64,000 nt of DNA from Selaginella moellendorffii (lineage: Eukaryota; Plantae; Lycopodiophyta): NCBI RefSeq assembly GCF_000143415.4, contig NW_003314357.1, positions 257,811 to 321,810 of the forward strand, read 5' to 3'. Shown one piece after another: positions 42,258-58,277 of the stretch (its first letter is position 1; each line of letters starts with the position of its first letter). Under the pieces are notes generated by a model, which saw only the letters and a list, made by a program, of their open reading frames with translations, was not told where the DNA came from and ran no database searches. A program made the translations under genes and the position numbers.

Positions 42258-44000
42258 TTAGGGCGCAATGCTATTGGTAAGCAACACATAGTGAATGGAG
42301 CTCGCTGGATCCAACTGACCCGCCCCACACGCGCTCAAGAATGTAGTCCACGTTACATCGTTTGGGCGGTAGGGCATTGCTTGGAGGAGATCTAGTGCTT
42401 CTTCGATTTGCCCAGCACGCGCAAGAATCCCCAGCATTCGCGTGTAGTGATCGAGCCCTGGCTCCAGCGAGTGATCGTGTCTCATGGACACAAAGCTCTC
42501 CCGCGCCAATGCTACCAGCCCGCTATGGCCACAGCTAAAGAGAAGGCTGTTGAAGACCACGTGGTCGGCTGGGATGCCGTGGTGGAGCATTGCCCTGAGC
42601 GTATCGACGGTCGCCCTGGCACAGCCGTTGAGAGCGTAGGACGCAATCAGGGCCGTCCACAGCACTGCATCGTCTCCACCTCCCTTCTGGACAGCCAGAT
42701 CGAACAGCCGACAAGATTCTGCCACGTAGCCCCTCTGCGCGTGTGCGGCAATCGTCGCCGTCCACGACATTGCCTCCCTCTCGGGCATCTTCTCCAGGGC
42801 TTCTTGAGCGAGTGCGAGATGCCCGTTTTGGGCATATGCTCCAACCATTGCGTTCCAGCACACGCAATCGCGCCTTGGCATTAGATCGAAGATGTCTCTC
42901 GCTCTATCAATGGAACCATGGATGGAATAGGCGATTATCATTGAAGTCCAGCACACCATATCCACATTCACAGTGGAAGAAGCCATGGAATGGAAAATCT
43001 TCTCGGCCTCGTCCAAGCAGCCGCTCTGGGCAAGCGCCTGGAGCATTGCGGTCTTGCTTGACAGATTCCACATTGGCATCCTGGTAAAAACTGCCCTGGA
43101 ATCTCCATAACCCGAGCATGCCGCCACTAAAACGGCATTCCAGGACGTGATGCTGCGGTGTGGCATCTCGGAGAAGATGCCATGGGCTTTGCCGTATATG
43201 CCGTACTGCAAGAATGCGCCAATGATGCCCGTGCAAGCTCCGGAATCGTGACGCGGCATCTTTGCAAACACCTCTGTCGCGCCCTCAAGATGCCCGGACA
43301 GGGAATATGCCCTGGACAGGATTGTCCACGACACGGCATCTGGGCGTGGAATGGAATCGAACACCATGCGTGCCTCTGTAAGCTTTTGGGACTCGGTGTA
43401 CATTCCAAGTATCTCGTTCCACGACACCACATTGGGCTCTGGCATCTTCGAGAAGAAAAGACACGCACAAACAATTTGCCTCCTCTGGGCATATGCCGCA
43501 AGCATAAGATTCCACGTGTATACGTTCCTGAGGGGCATGGAATCAAAGAGCGATATCGCGGCACTAAGGTTCTCAAGATTTGATAGAGCGGTGATGACGT
43601 AATTACAAGAGAAAACATCCCAATGGGGCATAGAGTAGAAGATCTGTAAACATGTTTGGAAATGCCCTACCTGGGCATATGCGGTGATAAGCGTGTTCCA
43701 GGCCACCATGTTCCACAGAGGCATCCGATCGAAGGTTCCTTTCGTGCTGTGGGGATCGCTATTGCGCACGTACGCGGCGGCCATGGTGTTCCACGAAACA
43801 AAGCTACGCTCGGGCATGGAATCGAACAGTCGCTTCGCCGCTGCCACATCCCCAGTCTGGGCATGACTGGAGATTATCATGTTCCACGTCACCACGTCCC
43901 AGCTGGGCATTCGGTGGAAGGTGAAGCGGGCCTCCTCCATTCTCCCCGCTTGAATCAGTGCCTGGATCCTGGCGGTCCACGGTATCGCGATCCTTGGCAT
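42258..44000 (-). CDS. PPR protein (S-motif-rich PLS class, truncated E domain), intronless
   Basis: Tandem ~31-aa units (VxWNxMIxAYAQxGxxxxAxxxFxxMP) ending MPYRPNDVTWTTFLSAC..HYVLL. First in-frame ATG is at 44000. Confidence 0.85.
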   Translation of the reverse strand: MPRIAIPWTARIQALIQAGRMEEARFTFHRMPSWDVVTWNMIISSHAQTGDVAAAKRLFDSMPERSFVSWNTMAAAYVRNSDPHSTKGTFDRMPLWNMVAWNTLITAYAQVGHFQTCLQIFYSMPHWDVFSCNYVITALSNLENLSAAISLFDSMPLRNVYTWNLMLAAYAQRRQIVCACLFFSKMPEPNVVSWNEILGMYTESQKLTEARMVFDSIPRPDAVSWTILSRAYSLSGHLEGATEVFAKMPRHDSGACTGIIGAFLQYGIYGKAHGIFSEMPHRSITSWNAVLVAACSGYGDSRAVFTRMPMWNLSSKTAMLQALAQSGCLDEAEKIFHSMASSTVNVDMVCWTSMIIAYSIHGSIDRARDIFDLMPRRDCVCWNAMVGAYAQNGHLALAQEALEKMPEREAMSWTATIAAHAQRGYVAESCRLFDLAVQKGGGDDAVLWTALIASYALNGCARATVDTLRAMLHHGIPADHVVFNSLLFSCGHSGLVALARESFVSMRHDHSLEPGLDHYTRMLGILARAGQIEEALDLLQAMPYRPNDVTWTTFLSACGAGQLDPASSIHYVLLTNSIAP

Positions 44001-44439
44001 ACAACGGAGACTCAAAATCGGGGCTATGGCGCATTTGGAAGGGAGCGCGCTTCAAGCAGTACGGGGACACGGCCGAGCCCTGGAGAGTCTATCCTACCCC
44101 AGCTCTGGGGTAGGATATAGATCCGCGCCACCCTTGGTATGCTGGAGAATTACTGAGCCTTTCCATTTGGATCACGGGGCAAGGTGACGCTAACGAGTAG
44201 GCTCCCAGGCTTGTGGGAGTGGAGCGTCTCGTTACCGGGTTACCAAGATCGATCAAGCCCATTTTCTCTTTTGAGTGGCTTTAACGAGTGCGTGGCACTG
44301 GAAGTTTTCCCCACCATGCCGGATCAAGGCTTTGGCTGTTCTTGGTGCCTGCGCCGTCTTGGCAGCGGGAGAAGACGACAGAGAGGTGGCTGGATAAATG
44401 GTGAAAGTGGGCTCTCTGCCTCGAGTCTAACCGGTTTCT

Positions 44440-47675: not shown

Positions 47676-47794
47676 GAAAACAAGCATAGGATCTTTTGTA
47701 ATGCTGGAAAAAAAACTCAGGAAAAGTACGGGAAAAGAACGAATAGACACCATTCCAGATTATGAAGGCTGCAACACAAAAGGATTCCACATCG

Positions 47795-48400
47795 CAAAAC
47801 ACTGCCCTGGAATAACCCGAGCATGCCGCCACTAAAACAGCGTGATAAGATGCCATGGGCTTTGCCGTATAGGCTGTAGTGCAAGAATGCGCCAATGATG
47901 CCCGTGCAAGCTCCGGAATCGTGACACGGCATCTTTTCTAACACCTCTGTCGCACCCTCAAGATGCCCAGACAGGGAATATGCCCTGGACAGGATTGTCC
48001 ACGACACGGCATCTGAGCGTGGGATGGAATTGGGCATGACTGGAGATTATCATGACCACGTCCCGGTGGAAGGTGAAGCGGGCCTCCTCCATTCTACCCG
48101 CGCCTTGGCGGTCCACCCTTGGCATACAACGAAGATTCAGTGCTCTAAAATCTGGGCTATGGCGCATTTGGAAGGGAGCTAAGGCGCACGGGCGCTTCAA
48201 GCAGTATACAATTCCAGCCAAGTGAGCTGGAGAGTCAATCCTACCCCAGCTCTGGGGCAGGATATAGTTCCGACATCACAGGCTGCTGTGCTTGTCGCGA
48301 GGAGCATGCTTCCTCGTTGGAACAAGGCCTTGCTGAGCCTTTCCATTTGCATCACAAGGTGATGCTGGAGAGGGAAACGAGTAGGCTCCCAGGCCTGGTG
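47795..48400 (-). pseudogene. Internally deleted duplicate of the 5' part of the 42258-44000 PPR gene
   Basis: Near-identical blocks to 43090-43355 and 43855-44210 (DAVSWTILSRAYSLSGHLEGATEV; GRMEEARFTFHR). Confidence 0.88.
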
Positions 48401-49205
48401 TTCTCGGGGATTCTGCGAACAATGTGCTGCTAGCGGTCAAGAGCTGGTTTTGTACTCCACAGGAGGCCGGTGTCAAGAGCTTCAGGCTCCTCTTGCGATC
48501 ATCCACCATCGATGTAAGCTGCAAGCGACGACAACGTATTATGGTTTTATCGTGAATGGATGTGAGCTGCTTATTTTCTTCTTCTTCTTTTATTATGCTG
48601 GAAGTACATCAAGTCTGAAGGAATTTAAACGGAATTTAATCATGTTTGGAGAAACTTAAAAAGGAAGAAAATACTTCTCTCACATCCACATCATCTTTTC
48701 CTGATCACCTCATCCACACCAACTCTCGTTTCCGCTCTCATTTCCGCGACTTTAGAAGCAAGCATCACAAGACTTTTAGAGTGATTGCATCCGTGCCCTC
48801 TATGACAATCACCTAGTAAGAGAATCTGAAGACTAAGCCTTGTAGGTAAGTAAAACTCAATGAATACCTACAATTGCTTCTCCACTCCGAGAGGTGTGCG
48901 CATTGTTGTAAACTCTTGCCAACTTTGTTTTCTTTTTGCAGATGGAGAAAACTTTTCATTCGTGGCACTGCTACAGGCAAGGATTGTGATGCAGGTCTTT
49001 GTGGAGATGCATATCACTCTCACTTTCTAGCTCATAAGATCAGATTCATGTCAACCAGTGATACCTCCCAGCCTATCCGATCTCAAAGTCTAAACATGAA
49101 ATTGATCTCAACCCCAGAGATGATGAGAGCATTTGAGCTTGAAAGAACTTGGCCCTCTCTCTCTCTCCCTCTCTCTCTTTCTCTTTGATTTTATGGCTAG
49201 CTAGG

Positions 49206-49934
49206 CTAGTGCCCTCCACTCTTTACGTGTTCTTCGTACGCAGCTGGGTCCATTAGGCCGTCGAGATCGGAGACGTTGGACATCTTCACTTTGATCAGCC
49301 ATCCCTCGCCAAACGCATTCTTGTTCACCTGGAAGCAAGAAGGCAATTCGGGAGTGATTCAAGAAAGAAAATTTGCTCCTGGTGTCACTTACGAGCGCTG
49401 GAGTTTGCTTGACTTCTTCGTTCACTTCAATCACTTCGCCAGACACTGGGCTGTAGATATCGCTGCAAGCCTTGACGCTCTCCACCACACCAAAGTTCTT
49501 CCCTTTCGTCACAGAAGACCCAATTTCTGGCAAATCCGCAAACACCACATCACCCAATTCATGCTACATACACACAACAATCACGAGAGATAGAAAATAA
49601 AAAGAGAAAAATTTCAAGCTCGTTTTACCTGGGCATGGTCGCTGATACCCACAGTTCCAGTCCCACTCTCCACCTTGACCCATTCGTGCGATTCCAGAAA
49701 TTTCAAGTCTTGGGGGATTGGAACGGTAGCTGCGGCTTCGGCTGGAAGAGAAAACGAAAGAGGGTAAGAATCACGTTGAATTTGCGTGCTAGATCCATGC
49801 ACATTGCGATGAAAATCCCAGGACTTACTTGCAAATCCTCGCGCCAGTGGAATCGCCAAGGCCTGCGCCAGGTGAGGCTGGCATCGAATTCTCAGAATCG
49901 TGGCAGCTTGCGCCGCCATAGACCGGAGCGCCAT
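49206..49934 (-). CDS. GDCH: Glycine cleavage system H protein, mitochondrial, 4 exons
   Basis: Exons 49934-49829, 49741-49629, 49563-49393, 49328-49206. [23 protein letters not shown], lipoyl motif [14 protein letters not shown], and an Arg/Ala-rich transit peptide. Confidence 0.95.
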
Positions 49935-50151: not shown

Positions 50152-50943
<792 letters not shown>

Positions 50944-50999
50944 GAAAGCTTCTCGATCGAAGAGATGGATAGAAAATAATGGAAAGCAAAAACCTCTTT

Positions 51000-53647
51000 C
51001 TAGTAGCGCTCGTTGTCCGAGAGATCGTCGTTGATGCTTGCGTCGAAACCATCGTAGTGTTCTTCGTCCCCGCCACAGCCCAATCCCAGCCCCATTGGAA
51101 CGACGCCGCCACTGCCATTTCTTTCGAAGCTCCCGGAGTCTTGGAACTCTCTGGGAGTCGTGAGGTACGTAGCCGAGCTCACGGCAGCGTCCAAGTTGTG
51201 ATCCGGATCACTGTCGTGGTAAAGTACGTCCATTTGTGACATGCTGCTGCTGATGATCGAGTCAGGTACAGAGATGATGTAAAAGCGGAGATTACCTCAG
51301 GTGTGGATCGGAATCGGCTCGACCGGGCATTGGGCCCATGTATCTATACCATCCACGCAAAGTTTTGAGATTCATGATTTGGTTCCGGTACCAGACCTGT
51401 GAAGAGAAGAAAGGTATCAGCGAGGAAAAGATATATGCACGACTTACGTTCGATTCGGGCTTTCCGATCGGAGCTAGAAAGAGTTGCCTCGGTTCACTCG
51501 CGGACGCTTTTGGAGGCGCGTGGAAGAAGTACTTGTCCAGACATAGCACGACGTCACTCTCGGAGCACGACACAGGCTCTCTAAACGAGGATTTTCGCTT
51601 GTGATTTGCAGCTCTTTTCTCATCGTATCTGAAAGCAAACATTTTCAAGCCATTATAACCAGAAAGATGAAAGAATAAAACGAGCGAGAACTTACTCCCA
51701 GGTCGCAGTGCCGTCCCCGTTCCCAAATCGTTTGAACTCTACGTCCGTCGTATAGTAGAGTTCCATATGTCCATGGACATGAAACTTGCGTATGACGTAG
51801 AAGCAAAGCCTCTTCAGCAAACCATACGGGTCCGTCACTTGGTTTGCAGGATGGCAAAGAATGTCCTCCTCCGGAGCAGGAATCCATTCGTCAGGATTCT
51901 TCCTTCGTTTCACATTTCCTCCGTGTGATTTGCTATACTTCATAGCTTCGAGACATGCAAGCCTCGCTCTTTCAAAGAGTGAGTCTCTGCTCAAGTCGAC
52001 CCCAGGACCATCATATCGTCCCTGTAGCTGTAGTTTTCTGTAGTGAGATCTGAGAATGCGGCAAAATGCCCGGAACATGGCACGCAAACTAGAAACAGAA
52101 AAACGAGATTGAGTGGGTAATCAGAAAAAAAAAAAAAAAAAAAAAACAGGAAAGATAGACCTGTACCTTTCCGAAGGAAAAAGGCTTCCGTTCCGCTTCT
52201 TTACCATGCGAAAGAACTTCGTAAGACAATCAGCAAGTTCTGGCAGAGGTAGATCCTCGAGATTAGAAGATGGCAGTCCCTGCTCTTTCCTCCATTCTAA
52301 GAAATGCCGCCTGGAAAATGACAGTAGAAAGAAAAACATTAGCATGTAAACCAAGCTGCAAGAAAATCTTCGCATACTTCGCCCACAGATCACTACATAG
52401 GCTTCGATTCTTCTCTTCTCGATCAGCGTCGGCATTAATATGCGGCTGCATATCCAGGGACGGAAGTAGACCTTGATTATTTGGCATTGCCTCAAATAGT
52501 TGGTCATGAATACCATTCGCAGCAGAAGCGCTCATCTCATCACCGCCTGCATTTTCAACGTAAGCAGAAGCATAGTGCCAGAGTTGGGATACGTACCGGC
52601 ACAGTACGTTTCTTCAAGCTTCAAGTCCGGGCTGCAAGGAGCTTCTCCAAGGTAAAAGCTCCCGTCGGATGAATTACTGGGAAACTAGAAGAACAAGCTG
52701 TTTGGAGAAGGAAGACAAATACTAAATACCTTCACAGTCGAGGGTGCCGCTTGCAATACAGGTTTGGGCTGCTTCCGCGACGGGTTCAAAGGACTGACGT
52801 TTATAGCCATAGCCCTCTGTTTCGCTCTAATGCACTCCACAGTATCCAAAACTTTCAAAGTTTTGATCTGTGAGATGAAAAACATTAGCAGTTATAAGAG
52901 CGAGCTTGCTCCGTGTACCTTCCCTTCCGCTAGAGCAGCTTCCAAATGGAACACTCGGCTCTGGGCTGCGAGAAGAAGCTTCAAATCAAAAAGGCTACAT
53001 CAGCGATGAACTAAGGCATGACAAACAAGAAGCAACACGCCGTCTCTAAGAACCAACCTGCTGAAAGGGTCTCGAAAAACTCCCAAATCAGTGTGCTCAT
53101 GTTGTCGCTGGCACATCTCCCTTCTGAAAGCTCCAGCTCCAGCGAGATTTCTCTCAAGGAGATCCTGGTTTTCAGTCGTCCCGATGCAGCAGCACCTGGG
53201 ATGGGAGCATTTGAAAAGTGAGGGAAGTGTTCGAGAAGAACACCAGAAAAACTAAGCAAGCATAAAGAAGAAACTCACGACTAGGTGCTGCCGCGCTGAG
53301 CTCAAACTTCACTTGGTTGGATGAAAAGCCATCGTGTAGATTTTGCATATAGACAGGGAAGCTATCGCGTATTCCCAGCTCATTTCTCTGCAGTAGAACC
53401 ACTCAAGCTATAGCCAGAAATCGTTGAGCACAGACACAATGCTCACCAGATTTTCGAGGTAGTCGTAGTCGAAGCTCGCGCGCCAGGTGTTGGAATGGAA
53501 GTCGGACACCACGACGTGCAAATCCTCGTAGCGGGAAGGATTGATGGAGAACAAGAATGCGGTGCTGCTGCAATGCGCGGCAAGCAAGGGATCGATCTGG
53601 CCCTGCGCTCGATTGCAGATCGGCTTGAAGCTGGACAGCGCCTCCAT
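51000..53647 (-). CDS. PAXX/XLF-like head and coiled coil fused to a Crypton-derived DUF3504/ZMYM-QRICH1-like domain, 12 exons, ~652 aa
   Basis: In-phase GT-AG model: 53647-53447, 53387-53279, 53195-53058, 52965-52919, 52867-52730, 52684-52597, 52546-52378, 52310-52167, 52088-51696, 51628-51448, 51396-51296, 51249-51000 (1959 nt, no internal stop). Domain calls are from recalled motif patterns. Confidence 0.75.
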
Positions 53648-53944
53648 CGATCGCTCGTCGGCACCGCTGCTCACCTCTAGCTCAGGGGCGCCATCGCTCG
53701 CCCTAATAACCAGGAAGAGAAAGGAAGGAGTATCGAACCACCGACCTGGCCTGCTCAAAAGAATGTAGCTAGCCTAGGTCAGCTCAAAAGACGCGATCCT
53801 TCATAAGTTCTTTCTTGCCGCCTAAGGCGTCGCCGGGGATAGCGATGATCGCCTCTGCGAGCTCGAGAAGTAGTGAGGGTTTTCGATCATCTTGCGCGGA
53901 TCCAAGACTTTGAGCTGCAGGGGAGCCGCGGCTGCCACAGCAGG

Positions 53945-54619
53945 ATGGAGAGATGCGATCTTCTTGAGCGCTTGGACGAGCAAGAACCGGGAGGAGATGG
54001 GCGGGGGAGGCGCTGCTGCTCCAAATTTCGGTCCGTGATGGCGTGCTTTTCAATCTTTCCTCACGAAATATTTCGCGCAGGTGCCAAGCTCGATCGAGGA
54101 ACCCTGCCGCCATCGCAGAATCTGTGCCCCGACGGATCGGTGGGATGCCAGGAGCCAGCTCCAACGATGGTGATCGTCATCGCCGGCCTGTGCGTCATGC
54201 TCTTCCTCATCGCGATCGCGTTGCTGCTGCTCTTCTACTCGTATTACAAGTACCGGAGGCCGGCCAGGGTGGGATTGGACGTGGAATCGGCCGCAGCTCT
54301 TGCGGCTATGGATGCCGCCGCCGGAGAGGACGAGGGTAGCGAGAACTACGATGGAGCTTTCTTGGTGTTGATGCCTGGCGACGAGGAGCCGCATTTCTTT
54401 GCAAGACCGAGTCCATTGCCGGGGGATTTGGAGGATCCGGAGGGTGTTACTGGCGAAATTTTGGCTGGAATTCTCGACGCCGTGCTGGATCGAGAGGCAG
54501 AGATCGCTGGCAATGCTGATGGTTCCAGTGGCGGTGATGGCAGCGTGGATCAGGGTGAGAATGGGAAGGATTTGAGAGGCGGAGGCGAGGAAGACGATCC
54601 CTCGAGGAGGCACCGATAG
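53945..54619 (+). CDS. GLUTAMINE DUMPER (GDU)-like single-pass membrane protein
   Basis: TM segment IAGLCVMLFLIAIALLLLFYSYYK (~GGLAAMLGLIAFALLILACSYW) and VIMAG-like FLVLMPGDEEPHFFARP. Start uncertain. Confidence 0.7.
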   Translation: MERCDLLERLDEQEPGGDGRGRRCCSKFRSVMACFSIFPHEIFRAGAKLDRGTLPPSQNLCPDGSVGCQEPAPTMVIVIAGLCVMLFLIAIALLLLFYSYYKYRRPARVGLDVESAAALAAMDAAAGEDEGSENYDGAFLVLMPGDEEPHFFARPSPLPGDLEDPEGVTGEILAGILDAVLDREAEIAGNADGSSGGDGSVDQGENGKDLRGGGEEDDPSRRHR

Positions 54620-54712: not shown

Positions 54713-56116
54713 ATGGGATTGTCGCAGTGGAACTCACTGCTTGCTGCGAATGCCCGGAGGAAGAATCTGGATGGCGTGAAGAGCGTCTTCGATCGAATGC
54801 CACTGCGCGACGCGATCTCCTACACGATCATGCTCAATGCCTACGCTCGCAGCGCGAAAATCGAGCTAGCAGTGGAAATCTTTATGCAAATGCCACACAA
54901 AGATCTCGTCGCTTCAAATTCTCTCGTGGAAGCATTTGCCCAATTGGGGCATTTGGAAGAAGCTTTGCGAGTGTTCCACGCGATGCCACTGTGGGACGTC
55001 GTGACGTGGACAAGCCTTTTAACGGCGTGCATACGTGGCGGCCATGCAGAGGCCGCTTTTTCCGTCTTCCAACGCATGCCGGCGTGGGATCTTGTGTCCT
55101 CGACCGCGATGCTAGCAGAATATGCCGATCACGGGCGTTTGGAAGATGCGCGGGACATTTTGTTGGCGATGGAGCTGCGCGATAGGGCTTGTTTGAATGC
55201 GATGTTGGCGGGATACGCCAAGAAGGGGCGGCTGGAAGAGGCGACGTGGGTTTTCCAGGGAATGCCGGAGCTGGATCTCATCTCCTGGAATTCGATGCTG
55301 CTGGCGCTCGTCCAGGGCGGGAGCTACGCCGAGGCGCAGCAATTCTTTGATGAGGCGATGTCGCAGTGGGATCTCGTCTCCGCCACGATGATGCTCAATC
55401 TCTTCTCGCAGATGATCGGTAGTGAATCCCAGGCAGCGGCTGTGGCGGCATTGTGTGAATCTTTGCCCGTCCACGACGAAATCTCCTCCACCGCGCTTCT
55501 TTCCTTGCACGCTCAATCGGCTCGAATGGAAGAAGCCAAGGTCGTGTTTGATCTCATGCCGGATCACAGCTTAGCCGCCTGGAACGCCATCCTGGCGGCC
55601 TACTGCGGCAATAATCTCGACGAGGCTGTGGAGCGGCTGTGGAATCGGATTCCAGTCCTGGATCTGGTCTCCTGGAACACGATGCTCGGCGCCTACATCC
55701 GCGAGGGCAGGATCCACGAATCCAAGCGCCTGTTCGATGCGATGCCGGAGAAGAATCCATACTCGTGGACGCTGCTCGTCTACGGCTACGCACAGCTAGG
55801 CCTCTTGGAGCGCGCCCTGGGCGTGTTCGTGGCCATGCCGGAGAAGGATCTGGTGGCTCTCACCGCGATGATGGACTCTTACACTCGCAATGCGGCCTTC
55901 GATCGCGCAGTGGAGATCTTCAACGAGGCCAAGCTCGTGGAATCGCCGGATCGCGCTTGCTTTACCTCGGCGCTGGTAGCATGCAGCCATTGGGGCAGGG
56001 TTGGAATGGGGATGCGCGTGCTGGACTCCATGGAGAGGGACTATGGCTTGATTCCAGGCGAGCAACACTACCGATGCGTCAGTGATCTGTGGGCTCGAGC
56101 GGCTGAAAGGGTTTAG
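54713..56116 (+). CDS. PPR protein (S-motif-rich PLS class), intronless, no complete E/DYW
   Basis: 467-aa ORF of tandem PPR units ending FTSALVACSHWG..HYRCVSDLWAR. Confidence 0.8.
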   Translation: MGLSQWNSLLAANARRKNLDGVKSVFDRMPLRDAISYTIMLNAYARSAKIELAVEIFMQMPHKDLVASNSLVEAFAQLGHLEEALRVFHAMPLWDVVTWTSLLTACIRGGHAEAAFSVFQRMPAWDLVSSTAMLAEYADHGRLEDARDILLAMELRDRACLNAMLAGYAKKGRLEEATWVFQGMPELDLISWNSMLLALVQGGSYAEAQQFFDEAMSQWDLVSATMMLNLFSQMIGSESQAAAVAALCESLPVHDEISSTALLSLHAQSARMEEAKVVFDLMPDHSLAAWNAILAAYCGNNLDEAVERLWNRIPVLDLVSWNTMLGAYIREGRIHESKRLFDAMPEKNPYSWTLLVYGYAQLGLLERALGVFVAMPEKDLVALTAMMDSYTRNAAFDRAVEIFNEAKLVESPDRACFTSALVACSHWGRVGMGMRVLDSMERDYGLIPGEQHYRCVSDLWARAAERV

Positions 56117-56177: not shown

Positions 56178-58277
56178 CTATGTAGATGACAACATGTTTG
56201 AGAGAAGCACGTAGAAAGCTGGATCCATGACTGGAGTGGAGACGCTAGAGCTGCTGGCCATGGAGACTTTACTTCTAATATCATTCATATTCAAAGAACT
56301 TGTACATGATCCTAGAAGTCGCTTGGATTCCTCGGCACTCGTCGTGAAAGGCATGCTGGCGATCAGATCTTGGGCTTCGACCAAGTGACCCGATCTCGCC
56401 AGAAGATCGACCATGCAGCAAAAGTGGTGCTTGCTCGGCTGGATCGCAAAGTCGCTGCTCATCGAAACGAAGCTCGCGACTCCAGCAGCCACCTCTCCCG
56501 CGTGGCTACACGCAACCAGCACCGAGACGAAGCACGACTCGTCCGGGAGCTCCACCATCTTGATCGTGTCAAAGAGAAGGACCGCCTCGTAGAACTGGCC
56601 GCTGTGAGCGTAGGCCGCGAGGAGCGTCGTCCAGGAGATGATGTCCGACTCGGGCATGGAGCCCAAGAAGTGAATCGCCCGAGACATCTCCCCGTTGATG
56701 ACATACCCGGCGAGCATCGCGTTCCAGCTGACCAAGTTCCGGACGAGCAGCGAACCAAACACTTGCTTCGAGTGCTCCAAGTGCCGGTGCTGGGCGTAAG
56801 CGACGAGCATCGCCACCGAAGCCACAACGTCGTCTCGCAGAAATCCATCCAGCAGCTGCCTGGCGTGCTCGAGGTACCCCTTGTGCGCGTACGCGACGAG
56901 CATGGCCGTCAAGCACACCGAGTCCCACTCGGGCATCTCCTCGAAGAGCCGCTTCGTCTTGTCGAGCTCCCCGTTCTCGGCATACGCGGCGAGGACGTTC
57001 GTGGAGGAGACGAGGTCGCGGCAAGGCAGGCTCCGGAAGAAGGTGGCGGCCTCGTCGGTGTGGCCGCTCCGGACATAGGCCAGCAGCATCGCGTTGGAGG
57101 AGATGGAGTCCCAGGCCAGCATCGAGTCGAAAGCTCTCTTGGTCTCGTCGAGAGAGCCGTGCTGGGAGCTCACAGTGAGGAGCGCGTTCCAGGAGACGAG
57201 GTTCCTCTCCGGCATTCGTTGGAACAGCGCCCTGGCCTTGGAGAGATCGCTGGCGTTGTGCGTGTAGGCCGAGAGGAGAGAGTTCCATGACACCATGTCG
57301 TGCTGCGGCATAGAGTCGAAGATGGCGTTGGCTCGATCGATATGCCCGGTCTGGGCATACGCTGAAAGCATCGCGTTCAAGGCTACTGTGTCGTGCTGGT
57401 GCATCGAGTGGAAGATCTTCTCAGCGCTAGCGCAGTCGCCGACTCGGGCATACACCCCGATCATGGCTGTGGAGGAGACCAAATTGTGTTCGGGCATTCG
57501 CCCGAGCAAGAGCTCCACGTCCATCGCCTGTTCTTCCTGCTGAGACTGCGATTGCCACTGGGAGCTGCTGTAAGCTCGCAGTAGTGTCGTGAAGGAGACG
57601 AGATTTCTCTGCGGCATCGCGTCCAGGAAGCGTCGAGCGTCGTTGAGCTTGCCGTGCTGCGTGAGCCCCAGGAGCATCGCGTTGTGGGAGATTAGATCCC
57701 ACTCGGGCATCGCGTCGAAGAGCCGCTGGAGAGTTTCTAGATCCCCGGCCTGTGCCAGCGCCGCCAGCATCGTGTTCCAGGAGACGAGATCCCAGCTTGG
57801 CGTCCCCGTGTCGAAGAGCTGCTTGCTCTCGCGGATGTGATCGTGCCCATGCGCCGAGAGGAGCGCATTGAAGGAGATCTGGTTCCAGCCAGGCGCCGCC
57901 GTGAAGAAGCGCCACGATTCTTCCAGATCCCCGGCCTGGCAATACGCGGCCAGCATCGCATTCCATGCCGCCATGTTCTTGGCCCAGGGAGGGATCTCCT
58001 CGTCGAAGAATGCCCTCGCCCTGGTGATCTGGCGGCTCCTGGAGTAGGCGCACAGCATGCTTACCCACGAGAATCCATCCCTGGTGCCGCTGCTCATCGA
58101 ATCAAACACCGCCCGGGCGTCGGCCGCGCTCCCACACCGCGCGTACATGTCGATGAGCTTGTTACACACGAATCCATCGCCGGCGCGGTGGTACTGATCG
58201 ACACGGGCGTGGATCTGTCTCGCCGATTCCCGATCGTTGCAGCGCTGGATGAGGAGGAGGCAATCCCCGCGATTCAT
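56178..58277 (-). CDS. PPR protein (PLS class, truncated E domain), intronless
   Basis: 699-aa ORF with NKLIDMYARCGS, about 17 repeats, FVSVLVACSHAG, HFCCMVDLLARSG and YVLLSNM. Confidence 0.9.
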   Translation of the reverse strand: MNRGDCLLLIQRCNDRESARQIHARVDQYHRAGDGFVCNKLIDMYARCGSAADARAVFDSMSSGTRDGFSWVSMLCAYSRSRQITRARAFFDEEIPPWAKNMAAWNAMLAAYCQAGDLEESWRFFTAAPGWNQISFNALLSAHGHDHIRESKQLFDTGTPSWDLVSWNTMLAALAQAGDLETLQRLFDAMPEWDLISHNAMLLGLTQHGKLNDARRFLDAMPQRNLVSFTTLLRAYSSSQWQSQSQQEEQAMDVELLLGRMPEHNLVSSTAMIGVYARVGDCASAEKIFHSMHQHDTVALNAMLSAYAQTGHIDRANAIFDSMPQHDMVSWNSLLSAYTHNASDLSKARALFQRMPERNLVSWNALLTVSSQHGSLDETKRAFDSMLAWDSISSNAMLLAYVRSGHTDEAATFFRSLPCRDLVSSTNVLAAYAENGELDKTKRLFEEMPEWDSVCLTAMLVAYAHKGYLEHARQLLDGFLRDDVVASVAMLVAYAQHRHLEHSKQVFGSLLVRNLVSWNAMLAGYVINGEMSRAIHFLGSMPESDIISWTTLLAAYAHSGQFYEAVLLFDTIKMVELPDESCFVSVLVACSHAGEVAAGVASFVSMSSDFAIQPSKHHFCCMVDLLARSGHLVEAQDLIASMPFTTSAEESKRLLGSCTSSLNMNDIRSKVSMASSSSVSTPVMDPAFYVLLSNMLSST

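Follow-up and report, generated by a model that had tools for sequence, protein, structure and literature searches.

The XRCC4-superfamily scaffold PAXX acts in DNA-break repair, and here we report that the Selaginella moellendorffii gene LOC9650439 makes one messenger RNA whose protein joins a PAXX-type head and stalk to a domain predicted to adopt a Crypton-type tyrosine-recombinase fold, in which the catalytic residues have been lost. The combination is conserved from clubmosses to conifers, and we found no paper describing it. The N-terminal part is homologous to plant PAXX but belongs to a paralogous family distinct from canonical short PAXX, whereas the C-terminal part most closely resembles, in its predicted structure, the Crypton-derived domain of human QRICH1. 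The function of the protein, a dimeric, non-catalytic DNA- or chromatin-binding scaffold, is inferred. Plant end joining is known only from its core factors plus PAXX, which was identified in 2023, and a conserved PAXX paralogue with an added structured module of the DNA-binding type would be a new candidate player in plant genome maintenance. To our knowledge and within the searchable literature, it would also be the first domesticated Crypton recombinase gene described in land plants.

Gene structure and transcripts

The gene lies on the minus strand of a 64,000-nucleotide (nt) stretch of S. moellendorffii DNA (contig NW_003314357.1 of assembly GCF_000143415.4, positions 257,811 to 321,810; hereafter referred to as the window). 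We rebuilt the gene model from the raw sequence and obtained twelve exons, at 53647-53447, 53387-53279, 53195-53058, 52965-52919, 52867-52730, 52684-52597, 52546-52378, 52310-52167, 52088-51696, 51628-51448, 51396-51296 and 51249-51000, separated by 11 GT-AG introns of 45-92 nt and encoding a stop-free frame of 652 codons. The model equals RefSeq XP_002989356.2 minus a 47-residue upstream extension (it is identical to residues 48-699 of the longer protein model, P0046), and is 98.6% identical to the 652-residue model of the other haplotype, XP_002980847.2. The features of the gene are as follows.

51000..53647 (-), the whole coding region of LOC9650439, with 12 exons encoding 652 amino acids (651 with the acceptor that the transcripts use).
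52826..53647 (-), exons 1 to 5 (first part), residues 1-179, the PAXX-type head (a β-sandwich with a helix-turn-helix insert, residues ~1-130) plus the coiled-coil stalk helix (residues 135-179).
52401..52825 (-), the linker, residues 180-289, rich in Ser/Pro/Gly/Asn, acidic overall and presumably disordered.
52604..52624 (-), a conserved linker motif, L232-K233-L234...Y238, a candidate remnant of the PAXX Ku-binding motif.
51325..52400 (-), residues 290-560, the two-lobed, Crypton-type tyrosine-recombinase-derived domain, with a helical N-lobe (residues ~290-400) resembling a core-binding or QRICH1-type domain and a C-lobe (residues ~405-560) resembling DUF3504 and covering the first two thirds of a recombinase catalytic domain.
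51773..51775 (-), the codon of His450, at the position of catalytic Arg I.
51607..51609 (-), the codon of Ala483, at the position of the conserved Lys of the E-R-x-S-K-N motif.
51000..51324 (-), residues 561-652 plus the stop codon, an acidic Ser/Asp-rich tail.
51247..51295 (-), intron 11 as the transcripts use it (49 nt), with a tandem NAGNAG acceptor.

Assembled transcripts from four independent studies (X1, X2, X6 and X10) support a single gene. Spliced contigs of 2029-2174 nt from X2, X6 and X10 each cover the whole gene with every intron removed, whereas in X1 the gene is covered by several shorter contigs. The ten joints recovered appear in all four studies, apart from the alternative exon-4 acceptor in X1, and the intron-8 joint, which falls at a poly-T tract, is contiguous in the records. 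The transcripts use the acceptor three bases further on at intron 11 (joint 51246/51296 in all four runs), so that exon 12 starts at 51246 and the protein has 651 residues, whereas the RefSeq model starts exon 12 at 51249. In addition, one study shows an alternative exon-4 acceptor at 52978. The preliminary description had proposed, from the sequence alone, a twelve-exon gene fusing a PAXX/XLF-like scaffold to a Crypton-derived domain, and had named transcripts of two separate genes as one outcome that would refute it; the transcripts show one gene, not two, and the motifs on which it based its domain calls are all present, at residues 7-144 and 294-541.

The PAXX-type head and the predicted recombinase-like domain

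Both domain assignments of the preliminary description are supported. Homology to PAXX was detected by phmmer at E 0.001, and a profile of the N-terminal domains hits the Arabidopsis thaliana PAXX (AtPAXX) crystal structure 8P26 at E 1.4e-15. A homology search with the head alone gave no hit, whereas the alignment query retrieved the cluster that holds the published Klebsormidium PAXX orthologue, A0A0U9HJC7. The AlphaFold model of residues 1-180 (pLDDT 83) has the strand and helix order of the fold, and its best PDB match is 8P26 (E 7e-9, TM 0.83, rmsd 2.8 Å), followed by CCDC61, XRCC4, SAS-6 and XLF.

The linker is poorly conserved apart from one motif, which in relatives reads as a basic run followed by S-S-L-K-L..N-S-Y. 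This motif aligns with the C-terminal basic motif of canonical PAXX from Pteridium and Klebsormidium, and the AtPAXX tail contains RKRGALLQD, but the basic run is lost in this gene, and the link to Ku binding is an inference only. The extreme C terminus, where AtPAXX carries its Ku-binding motif (the L228 region), is instead an acidic tail with a net charge of -15, and the tail of a relative found nothing in the PDB.

The C-terminal domain has a net charge of +13 and is predicted with a pLDDT of 90.4 to form a two-lobed tyrosine-recombinase fold. Its best matches are QRICH1 in the Zincore complex (9hjt_H; Foldseek E 6.9e-7; VIA Z 14.5, rmsd 3.2 Å over 146 residues), then Cre recombinase at Z about 11.5, with topoisomerase I at Z 7.7. 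Its ESM-Atlas structural neighbours are the KCTD1-like, ZMYM2-like and QRICH1 clusters, which carry PF12012 and PF25561, and its language-model neighbours are DUF3504 and DUF3435. By contrast, the Pfam DUF3504 (PF12012) score is below the curated cut-off (15.7 bits, E 0.016, against 29.7 bits; the relative P0013 scores 24 bits), single exons, which are too short, gave nothing relevant in Pfam, and a sequence profile of the C-terminal domain found no meaningful hit in the PDB. The Crypton assignment therefore rests on the predicted fold, on language-model features and on a chain of weak sequence hits.

The recombinase-like domain is truncated as well as mutated. The motif F-x-I-R-G-G-x-E-L-Y of free-standing relatives reads F-H-V-H-G-H-M-E-L-Y here, placing His450 at Arg I, and all six fusion proteins carry H, F, N or Y at this position. 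Ala483 replaces the presumed catalytic β-hairpin Lys, and all fusion proteins carry Ala; the equivalence of this position to Cre K201 is inferred from the motif position. Furthermore, four relatives in the alignment (P0008, P0011, P0013 and P0017) continue with SGRTT...TGHKS.GAY.RYD, whereas the acidic tail replaces this HxxR, His/Trp and Tyr segment in the present protein. Thus, at least five of the six catalytic positions of an active tyrosine recombinase (Arg, Lys, His-x-x-Arg, His/Trp and the Tyr nucleophile) are substituted or deleted.

Conservation and relationship to canonical PAXX

The same fusion occurs in the Selaginella paralogue LOC9653486, in Diphasiastrum complanatum, in Taxus chinensis and in two intron-free transcript contigs from other runs, which encode it in one open reading frame (the organisms of the Logan runs SRR17638750, SRR32617109 and SRR32617127 could not be named). 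Between the two transcript orthologues, dN/dS is 0.13 for the head, 0.10 for the recombinase-like domain, 0.20 for the linker and 0.15 overall, although dS is about 1.2, close to saturation. The gene sits in the same gene order in both haplotypes, between which there are 14 synonymous against 9 non-synonymous codon differences, and exons diverge by 1.2% against 2.7% for introns. No named angiosperm hit turned up in the searches.

The fused C-terminal domains and the fused heads each form one clade with 100/100 support, and the head clade is separate from canonical short PAXX of the fern Pteridium and the alga Klebsormidium; Pteridium gave only a canonical short PAXX, in a search restricted to 99-315 residues. 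The present paralogue sits on a long branch (0.59), and has lost the GGP insert of the head as well as the basic run before the LKL motif, and may therefore have drifted from the ancestral function.

Possible modes of action and related proteins

Together, these data are best explained by a real, expressed, single host gene belonging to a PAXX-paralogue family that formed once and persists under purifying selection in lycophytes and gymnosperms, a reading to which we assign a probability of about 0.72. In this reading, the protein consists of a PAXX-family head and coiled-coil stalk (the dimerizing XRCC4-superfamily module), a disordered linker with a degenerate remnant of the PAXX basic tail motif, a two-lobed domain derived from a Crypton-type tyrosine recombinase and an acidic tail; because Arg I and the Lys are lost and the entire HxxR/His/Tyr segment is missing, the domain cannot cleave or rejoin DNA. 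The most likely mode of action, which is inferred, is that the stalk makes a homodimer presenting two positively charged, clamp-shaped, non-catalytic recombinase-like modules, which bind DNA or DNA-bound proteins, as the related QRICH1 domain does in the Zincore complex. The protein would therefore be a bivalent DNA or chromatin tether, possibly coupling XRCC4-LIG4 or Ku to DNA, although in this particular paralogue the Ku motif looks eroded.

A less likely but possible alternative is that the protein is a chromatin or transcription co-regulator of the ZMYM/QRICH1 kind, in which the PAXX head and stalk serve only for dimerization, with no role in end joining. Consistent with this, the nearest solved structure is QRICH1 bound with SEPHS1 to a zinc-finger factor on DNA, all known DUF3504 genes are regulators, not repair factors (PMC3212892; PMC13538652), the Ku-type basic motif is eroded in this gene, and a separate canonical PAXX accession is listed for Selaginella. 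However, the head is as strongly constrained as the recombinase-like domain, which is more than simple dimerization would need, and most family members keep a basic run plus SSLKL motif that aligns with the PAXX Ku-binding tail.

A more speculative extension of the repair reading, which we consider doubtful although not excluded, is that non-flowering vascular plants have a dedicated end-joining or DNA-bridging factor, in which a PAXX-paralogue dimer uses two dead Crypton-recombinase clamps to hold DNA duplexes or ends while its head recruits XRCC4-LIG4, thereby supplying in structured form the DNA-tethering role that XLF tails play in animals. Alternatively, the gene could be a relic of a transposon-host alliance in which a Crypton recombinase was physically coupled to the repair machinery that seals its excision sites.

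It is improbable that the gene is simply the canonical and only PAXX of Selaginella with a domain inserted into its disordered tail. The strong homology to AtPAXX and the internal motif at about the right distance from the stalk would fit this view, but Khan and Ochi (doi 10.1101/2023.05.26.542399) list UniProt D8RQ89, the sequence of which we could not read, as the S. moellendorffii PAXX, whereas the accessions shown for the clusters holding the two fusion genes are D8SC65, D8T155, D8SQN0 and D8RT87, and the fused heads form their own clade. An active or recently active Crypton transposon that captured PAXX exons is very unlikely: Crypton-like proteins with an intact GHK...Y..RY motif exist in liverworts and in unnamed samples, but here the catalytic residues and the tyrosine segment are missing, the window holds one copy, which lies in the same gene order in both haplotypes, and orthologues span lycophytes to gymnosperms with dN/dS of about 0.15. 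An artefactual joining of two neighbouring genes, suggested only by the caveat in the preliminary description and by the fact that a length-maximizing splice search does produce wrong models (a 735-residue model with poor splice sites), is refuted by the spliced contigs, which run from the 3′ UTR to the 5′ UTR.

Among known proteins, AtPAXX (UniProt F4KC77) shares the XRCC4-superfamily head with a helix-turn-helix insert and the short coiled-coil stalk, a VK.ELGGPASA..G.GA motif present in most family members, and a basic-run plus Leu motif at about the same distance after the stalk. AtPAXX dimerizes, binds XRCC4 through its head and Ku through its C-terminal tail (L228), and stimulates LIG4 (doi 10.1101/2023.05.26.542399), but it has only 236 residues and ends in the Ku-binding tail, whereas the present protein continues for about 400 more residues.

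The animal DUF3504 genes QRICH1 (structure 9HJT), ZMYM2/3/4, WOC, KCTD1 and KIAA1958 are domesticated Crypton recombinases that lack the catalytic tetrad (PMC3212892), and they share with the present gene the two-lobed tyrosine-recombinase fold, here predicted, and the behaviour of conserved, expressed host genes. The plant gene probably represents an independent domestication, since its nearest sequence relatives are bryophyte and lycophyte proteins, and its partner domain is a PAXX head instead of MYM zinc fingers, a BTB domain or a Gln-rich region.

Trypanosomatid XRCC4/XLF/PAXX-like proteins with a C-terminal phosphodiesterase domain, noted by Khan and Ochi, are a precedent for an XRCC4-superfamily head and stalk fused to a second, nucleic-acid-related domain, but there the added domain is an apparently active enzyme, the lineage is different and there is no transposon origin. 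The ALOG domain of land-plant LSH1/G1 regulators (PMC3537659) and yeast Ndc10/Cbf2, which appears among our fold hits at Z 6.4, are known domestications of tyrosine-recombinase DNA-binding parts as non-catalytic DNA-binding modules. No Pfam ALOG hit was seen in the present protein, and whereas ALOG derives from the N-terminal domain of DIRS1-type retroposons only, this protein keeps both lobes.

Gene model, transcripts and locus

We rebuilt the gene from the raw sequence on the minus strand as twelve exons extending from the ATG at 53647 to the TAG at 51000. The eleven introns are 45–92 nt in length, are all GT–AG, and have pyrimidine-rich 3′ ends and lower G+C than the exons, and the resulting frame comprises an uninterrupted 652 codons. 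Since a search that merely maximizes frame length yields a different, poorer model, the frame alone is not proof. The proof comes from RNA. We aligned assembled transcript contigs from four independent studies (X1, X2, X6 and X10) to positions 50950–53750. Single contigs of 2029–2174 nt from three of the studies (X2, X6 and X10) run from the 3′ UTR to the 5′ UTR with every intron removed, whereas the fourth (X1) covers the gene in several shorter contigs. A long poly-T tract within intron 8 (52116–52159) was skipped as a repeat in the alignment. The listed joints fall exactly where we placed the introns, with two exceptions:

51246–51251 (minus strand), a tandem NAGNAG acceptor of intron 11; all four transcript sets use the acceptor three bases further on, so that exon 12 starts at 51246 and the protein is 651 residues with two Ser, whereas the RefSeq models use 51249 (three Ser)
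52966–52978 (minus strand), an alternative exon-4 acceptor at 52978 in one study (X1), which adds 13 nt, shifts the frame and would end the protein at 182 residues, giving either a product with the head but no stalk or a target for nonsense-mediated decay

The alternative outcome considered in the preliminary description, in which the transcripts would show two separate genes, is therefore not borne out, and the locus produces one mRNA.

An exhaustive HMMER search with exon 9 returned a 652-residue protein that is 98% identical over exon 9, and cluster look-ups revealed that the protein encoded in the window is Selaginella moellendorffii XP_002989356.2 (LOC9650439), of which our model equals residues 48–699. 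RefSeq XP_002989356.2 adds 47 N-terminal residues from an upstream exon (53890–53855, minus strand) spliced to 53746. No orthologue has this extension, the upstream exon overlaps a GDU-like membrane-protein open reading frame (ORF) on the opposite strand, and without that splice the frame upstream of the ATG at 53647 is closed by a stop codon. The other haplotype is XP_002980847.2 (LOC9657615), located on a scaffold (L001) with the same neighbours: a HECT ligase, two PPR genes, a GDU-like gene, this gene, a GST and the glycine-cleavage H protein. Between the haplotypes there are 14 synonymous and 9 non-synonymous codon differences, and exons diverge by 1.2% and introns by 2.7%. The window contains only one copy of the gene. 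Its surroundings include the following features:

42258–44015 (minus strand), a long intron-less PPR gene
47717–48037 (minus strand), a short ORF that repeats part of the 42258–44015 PPR protein almost word for word and looks like a duplicated fragment
49201–49934 (minus strand), a glycine-cleavage H protein gene, directly downstream
50170–50943 (plus strand), a tau-class glutathione S-transferase gene, directly downstream; this gene and the glycine-cleavage H protein gene are in the same order as in the other haplotype
53873–54619 (plus strand), the GDU-like membrane-protein ORF
54713–56116 (plus strand), a long intron-less PPR gene
56178–58277 (minus strand), a long intron-less PPR gene

N-terminal PAXX-family head and stalk

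Evidence at three levels agrees on the identity of the N-terminal half. First, language-model features of exon 1 point to XLF/XRCC4 clusters. Second, the full protein hits PDB chain 8p26_A, from the crystal structure of Arabidopsis thaliana PAXX (8P26), with an E value of 0.001, and a profile of six N-terminal domains hits it with an E value of 1.4e-15 over residues 8–171. Third, the AlphaFold model of residues 1–180 (pLDDT 83) shows a β-sandwich with a helix-turn-helix insert and a 45-residue stalk helix, and its best PDB matches by Foldseek are the ten 8P26 chains (TM 0.80–0.84 by target, rmsd about 2.8 Å), followed by CCDC61, XRCC4, SAS-6 and XLF. The same profile retrieves a 270-residue Pteridium protein that itself hits 8P26 with an E value of 3.9e-30, as well as the cluster containing Klebsormidium A0A0U9HJC7, which Khan and Ochi list as a PAXX orthologue. 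Thus, by homology, the head is a genuine member of the plant PAXX family. It is not, however, the canonical orthologue: the fusion heads form a 100/100 clade apart from the two canonical sequences, and Khan and Ochi give D8RQ89, the sequence of which we could not read, as the Selaginella PAXX, whereas the accessions shown for the clusters containing the two fusion genes are D8SC65, D8T155, D8SQN0 and D8RT87.

Predicted fold and catalytic residues of the C-terminal domain

Sequence-based assignment of the C-terminal half is weak. Pfam DUF3504 scores 15.7 bits against a cut-off of 29.7 for the whole protein, and 24 bits, together with a faint Phage_integrase hit, for a distant relative, and a sequence profile finds nothing in the PDB. 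By contrast, the predicted fold is decisive. With a 23-sequence alignment, residues 285–575 are predicted with a pLDDT of 90.4 to fold into a helical N-lobe and an α/β C-lobe. Foldseek ranks QRICH1 of the Zincore–ZFP91–DNA complex first (E 6.9e-7), followed by some thirty Cre recombinase chains. VIA-align gives a Z score of 14.5 for QRICH1 (rmsd 3.2 Å over 146 residues, the C-lobe), about 11.5 for Cre across both lobes, 8.2 for archaeal Xer, 7.7 for topoisomerase I and 6.4 for Ndc10. The ESM-Atlas structural neighbours are KCTD1-like, ZMYM2-like and QRICH1 clusters carrying PF12012 and PF25561, and then bacterial integrases, and the feature neighbours of exon 9 agree. Kojima and Jurka showed that exactly these animal genes are domesticated Crypton recombinases without the catalytic tetrad (PMC3212892).

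To examine the catalytic state of the domain, we aligned it with free-standing relatives from liverworts, Diphasiastrum and unnamed samples. Four of the five free-standing relatives (P0007, P0008, P0011 and P0013) keep F-x-I-R-G-G-x-E-L-Y, whereas P0017 has Trp at the Arg position, and all five keep E-R-x-S-K-N. Four of them (P0008, P0011, P0013 and P0017) continue with S-G-R-T-T ... T-G-H-K-S-x-G-A-Y-x-R-Y-D, which is box II, the His and the tyrosine region. In all fusion proteins, Arg I is replaced by H, F, N or Y (His450 here) and the Lys is replaced by Ala (Ala483). The chain leaves the recombinase fold after the helix at residues 546–556 and runs into an acidic, low-complexity tail. The domain therefore cannot perform strand cleavage. 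It keeps many invariant basic residues and has a net charge of +13, against −15 for the tail. The free-standing relatives without a PAXX head include Marchantia MARPO_0141s0031 (P0007), a Calypogeia fissa protein (P0017) and a Diphasiastrum protein (P0012). The Marchantia protein lacks the tyrosine motif and may represent a second domestication, whereas the Calypogeia protein and some unnamed proteins keep G-H-K...Y..R-Y and may be active Cryptons.

Distribution, selection and inferred function of the fusion

The same head–linker–recombinase-like architecture occurs in the Selaginella paralogue LOC9653486/LOC9657420 (700 residues, several isoforms), in Diphasiastrum complanatum (717 residues), in Taxus chinensis (715 residues, partial) and in two sets of intron-free transcript contigs from other public runs, encoding 727 and 725 residues in one frame. 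Ginkgo and Cryptomeria have fusion-type head fragments. No named angiosperm protein appeared among the hits of the exhaustive search, although most weak hits are unnamed. Between the two transcript orthologues (70% amino-acid identity), dN/dS is 0.13 for the head and stalk, 0.20 for the linker, 0.10 for the recombinase-like domain and 0.27 for the tail; as dS is about 1.2, these values are approximate. The fused C-terminal domains form one clade (100/100), separate from the free-standing bryophyte proteins, which fits a single fusion event before lycophytes and seed plants split. The gene in the window sits on a long branch (0.59, against 0.21 for its paralogue) and has lost the GGP insert of the head motif. 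RefSeq describes the genes as uncharacterized, and full-text literature searches combining PAXX with Crypton, DUF3504 or tyrosine recombinase, together with searches for plant PAXX, found no description of this architecture; Khan and Ochi mention a trypanosomatid XRCC4-like phosphodiesterase fusion, but nothing of this kind.

The only conserved linker element is a basic run followed by S-S-L-K-L..N-S-Y (L232, K233, L234 and Y238 here). MAFFT places this element against the C-terminal basic motif of canonical PAXX, which in Arabidopsis reads R-K-R-G-A-L-L-Q-D and contains the Ku-binding Leu228. This suggests, as an inference, that a complete PAXX coding region, tail included, was extended by a Crypton-derived module. 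In the gene in the window the basic run is absent, so Ku binding, if it ever existed, may be weakened.

A single mRNA joins a PAXX-type head and stalk to a dead, truncated and positively charged recombinase-like clamp, with purifying selection on both domains. We infer that the stalk dimerizes the protein as in AtPAXX and that each subunit contributes a non-catalytic clamp that binds DNA or DNA-bound partners, whereas the head may engage XRCC4. On the basis of sequence analysis, which cannot settle the matter, we consider a bivalent DNA or chromatin tether linked to end joining to be the single most likely function, and a ZMYM/QRICH1-style co-regulator to be the main rival.

The extreme C termini differ among the fusion proteins. 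Those of the Selaginella paralogue (P0002), Diphasiastrum (P0006) and Taxus (P0023) end in a shared motif, S-[DE]-[LI]-[DE]-E-I-[TN]-[LM], which the gene in the window lacks, ending instead in D-D-L-S-D-N-E-R-Y. Several tails carry [ST]-D-x-[DE] acidic sites.
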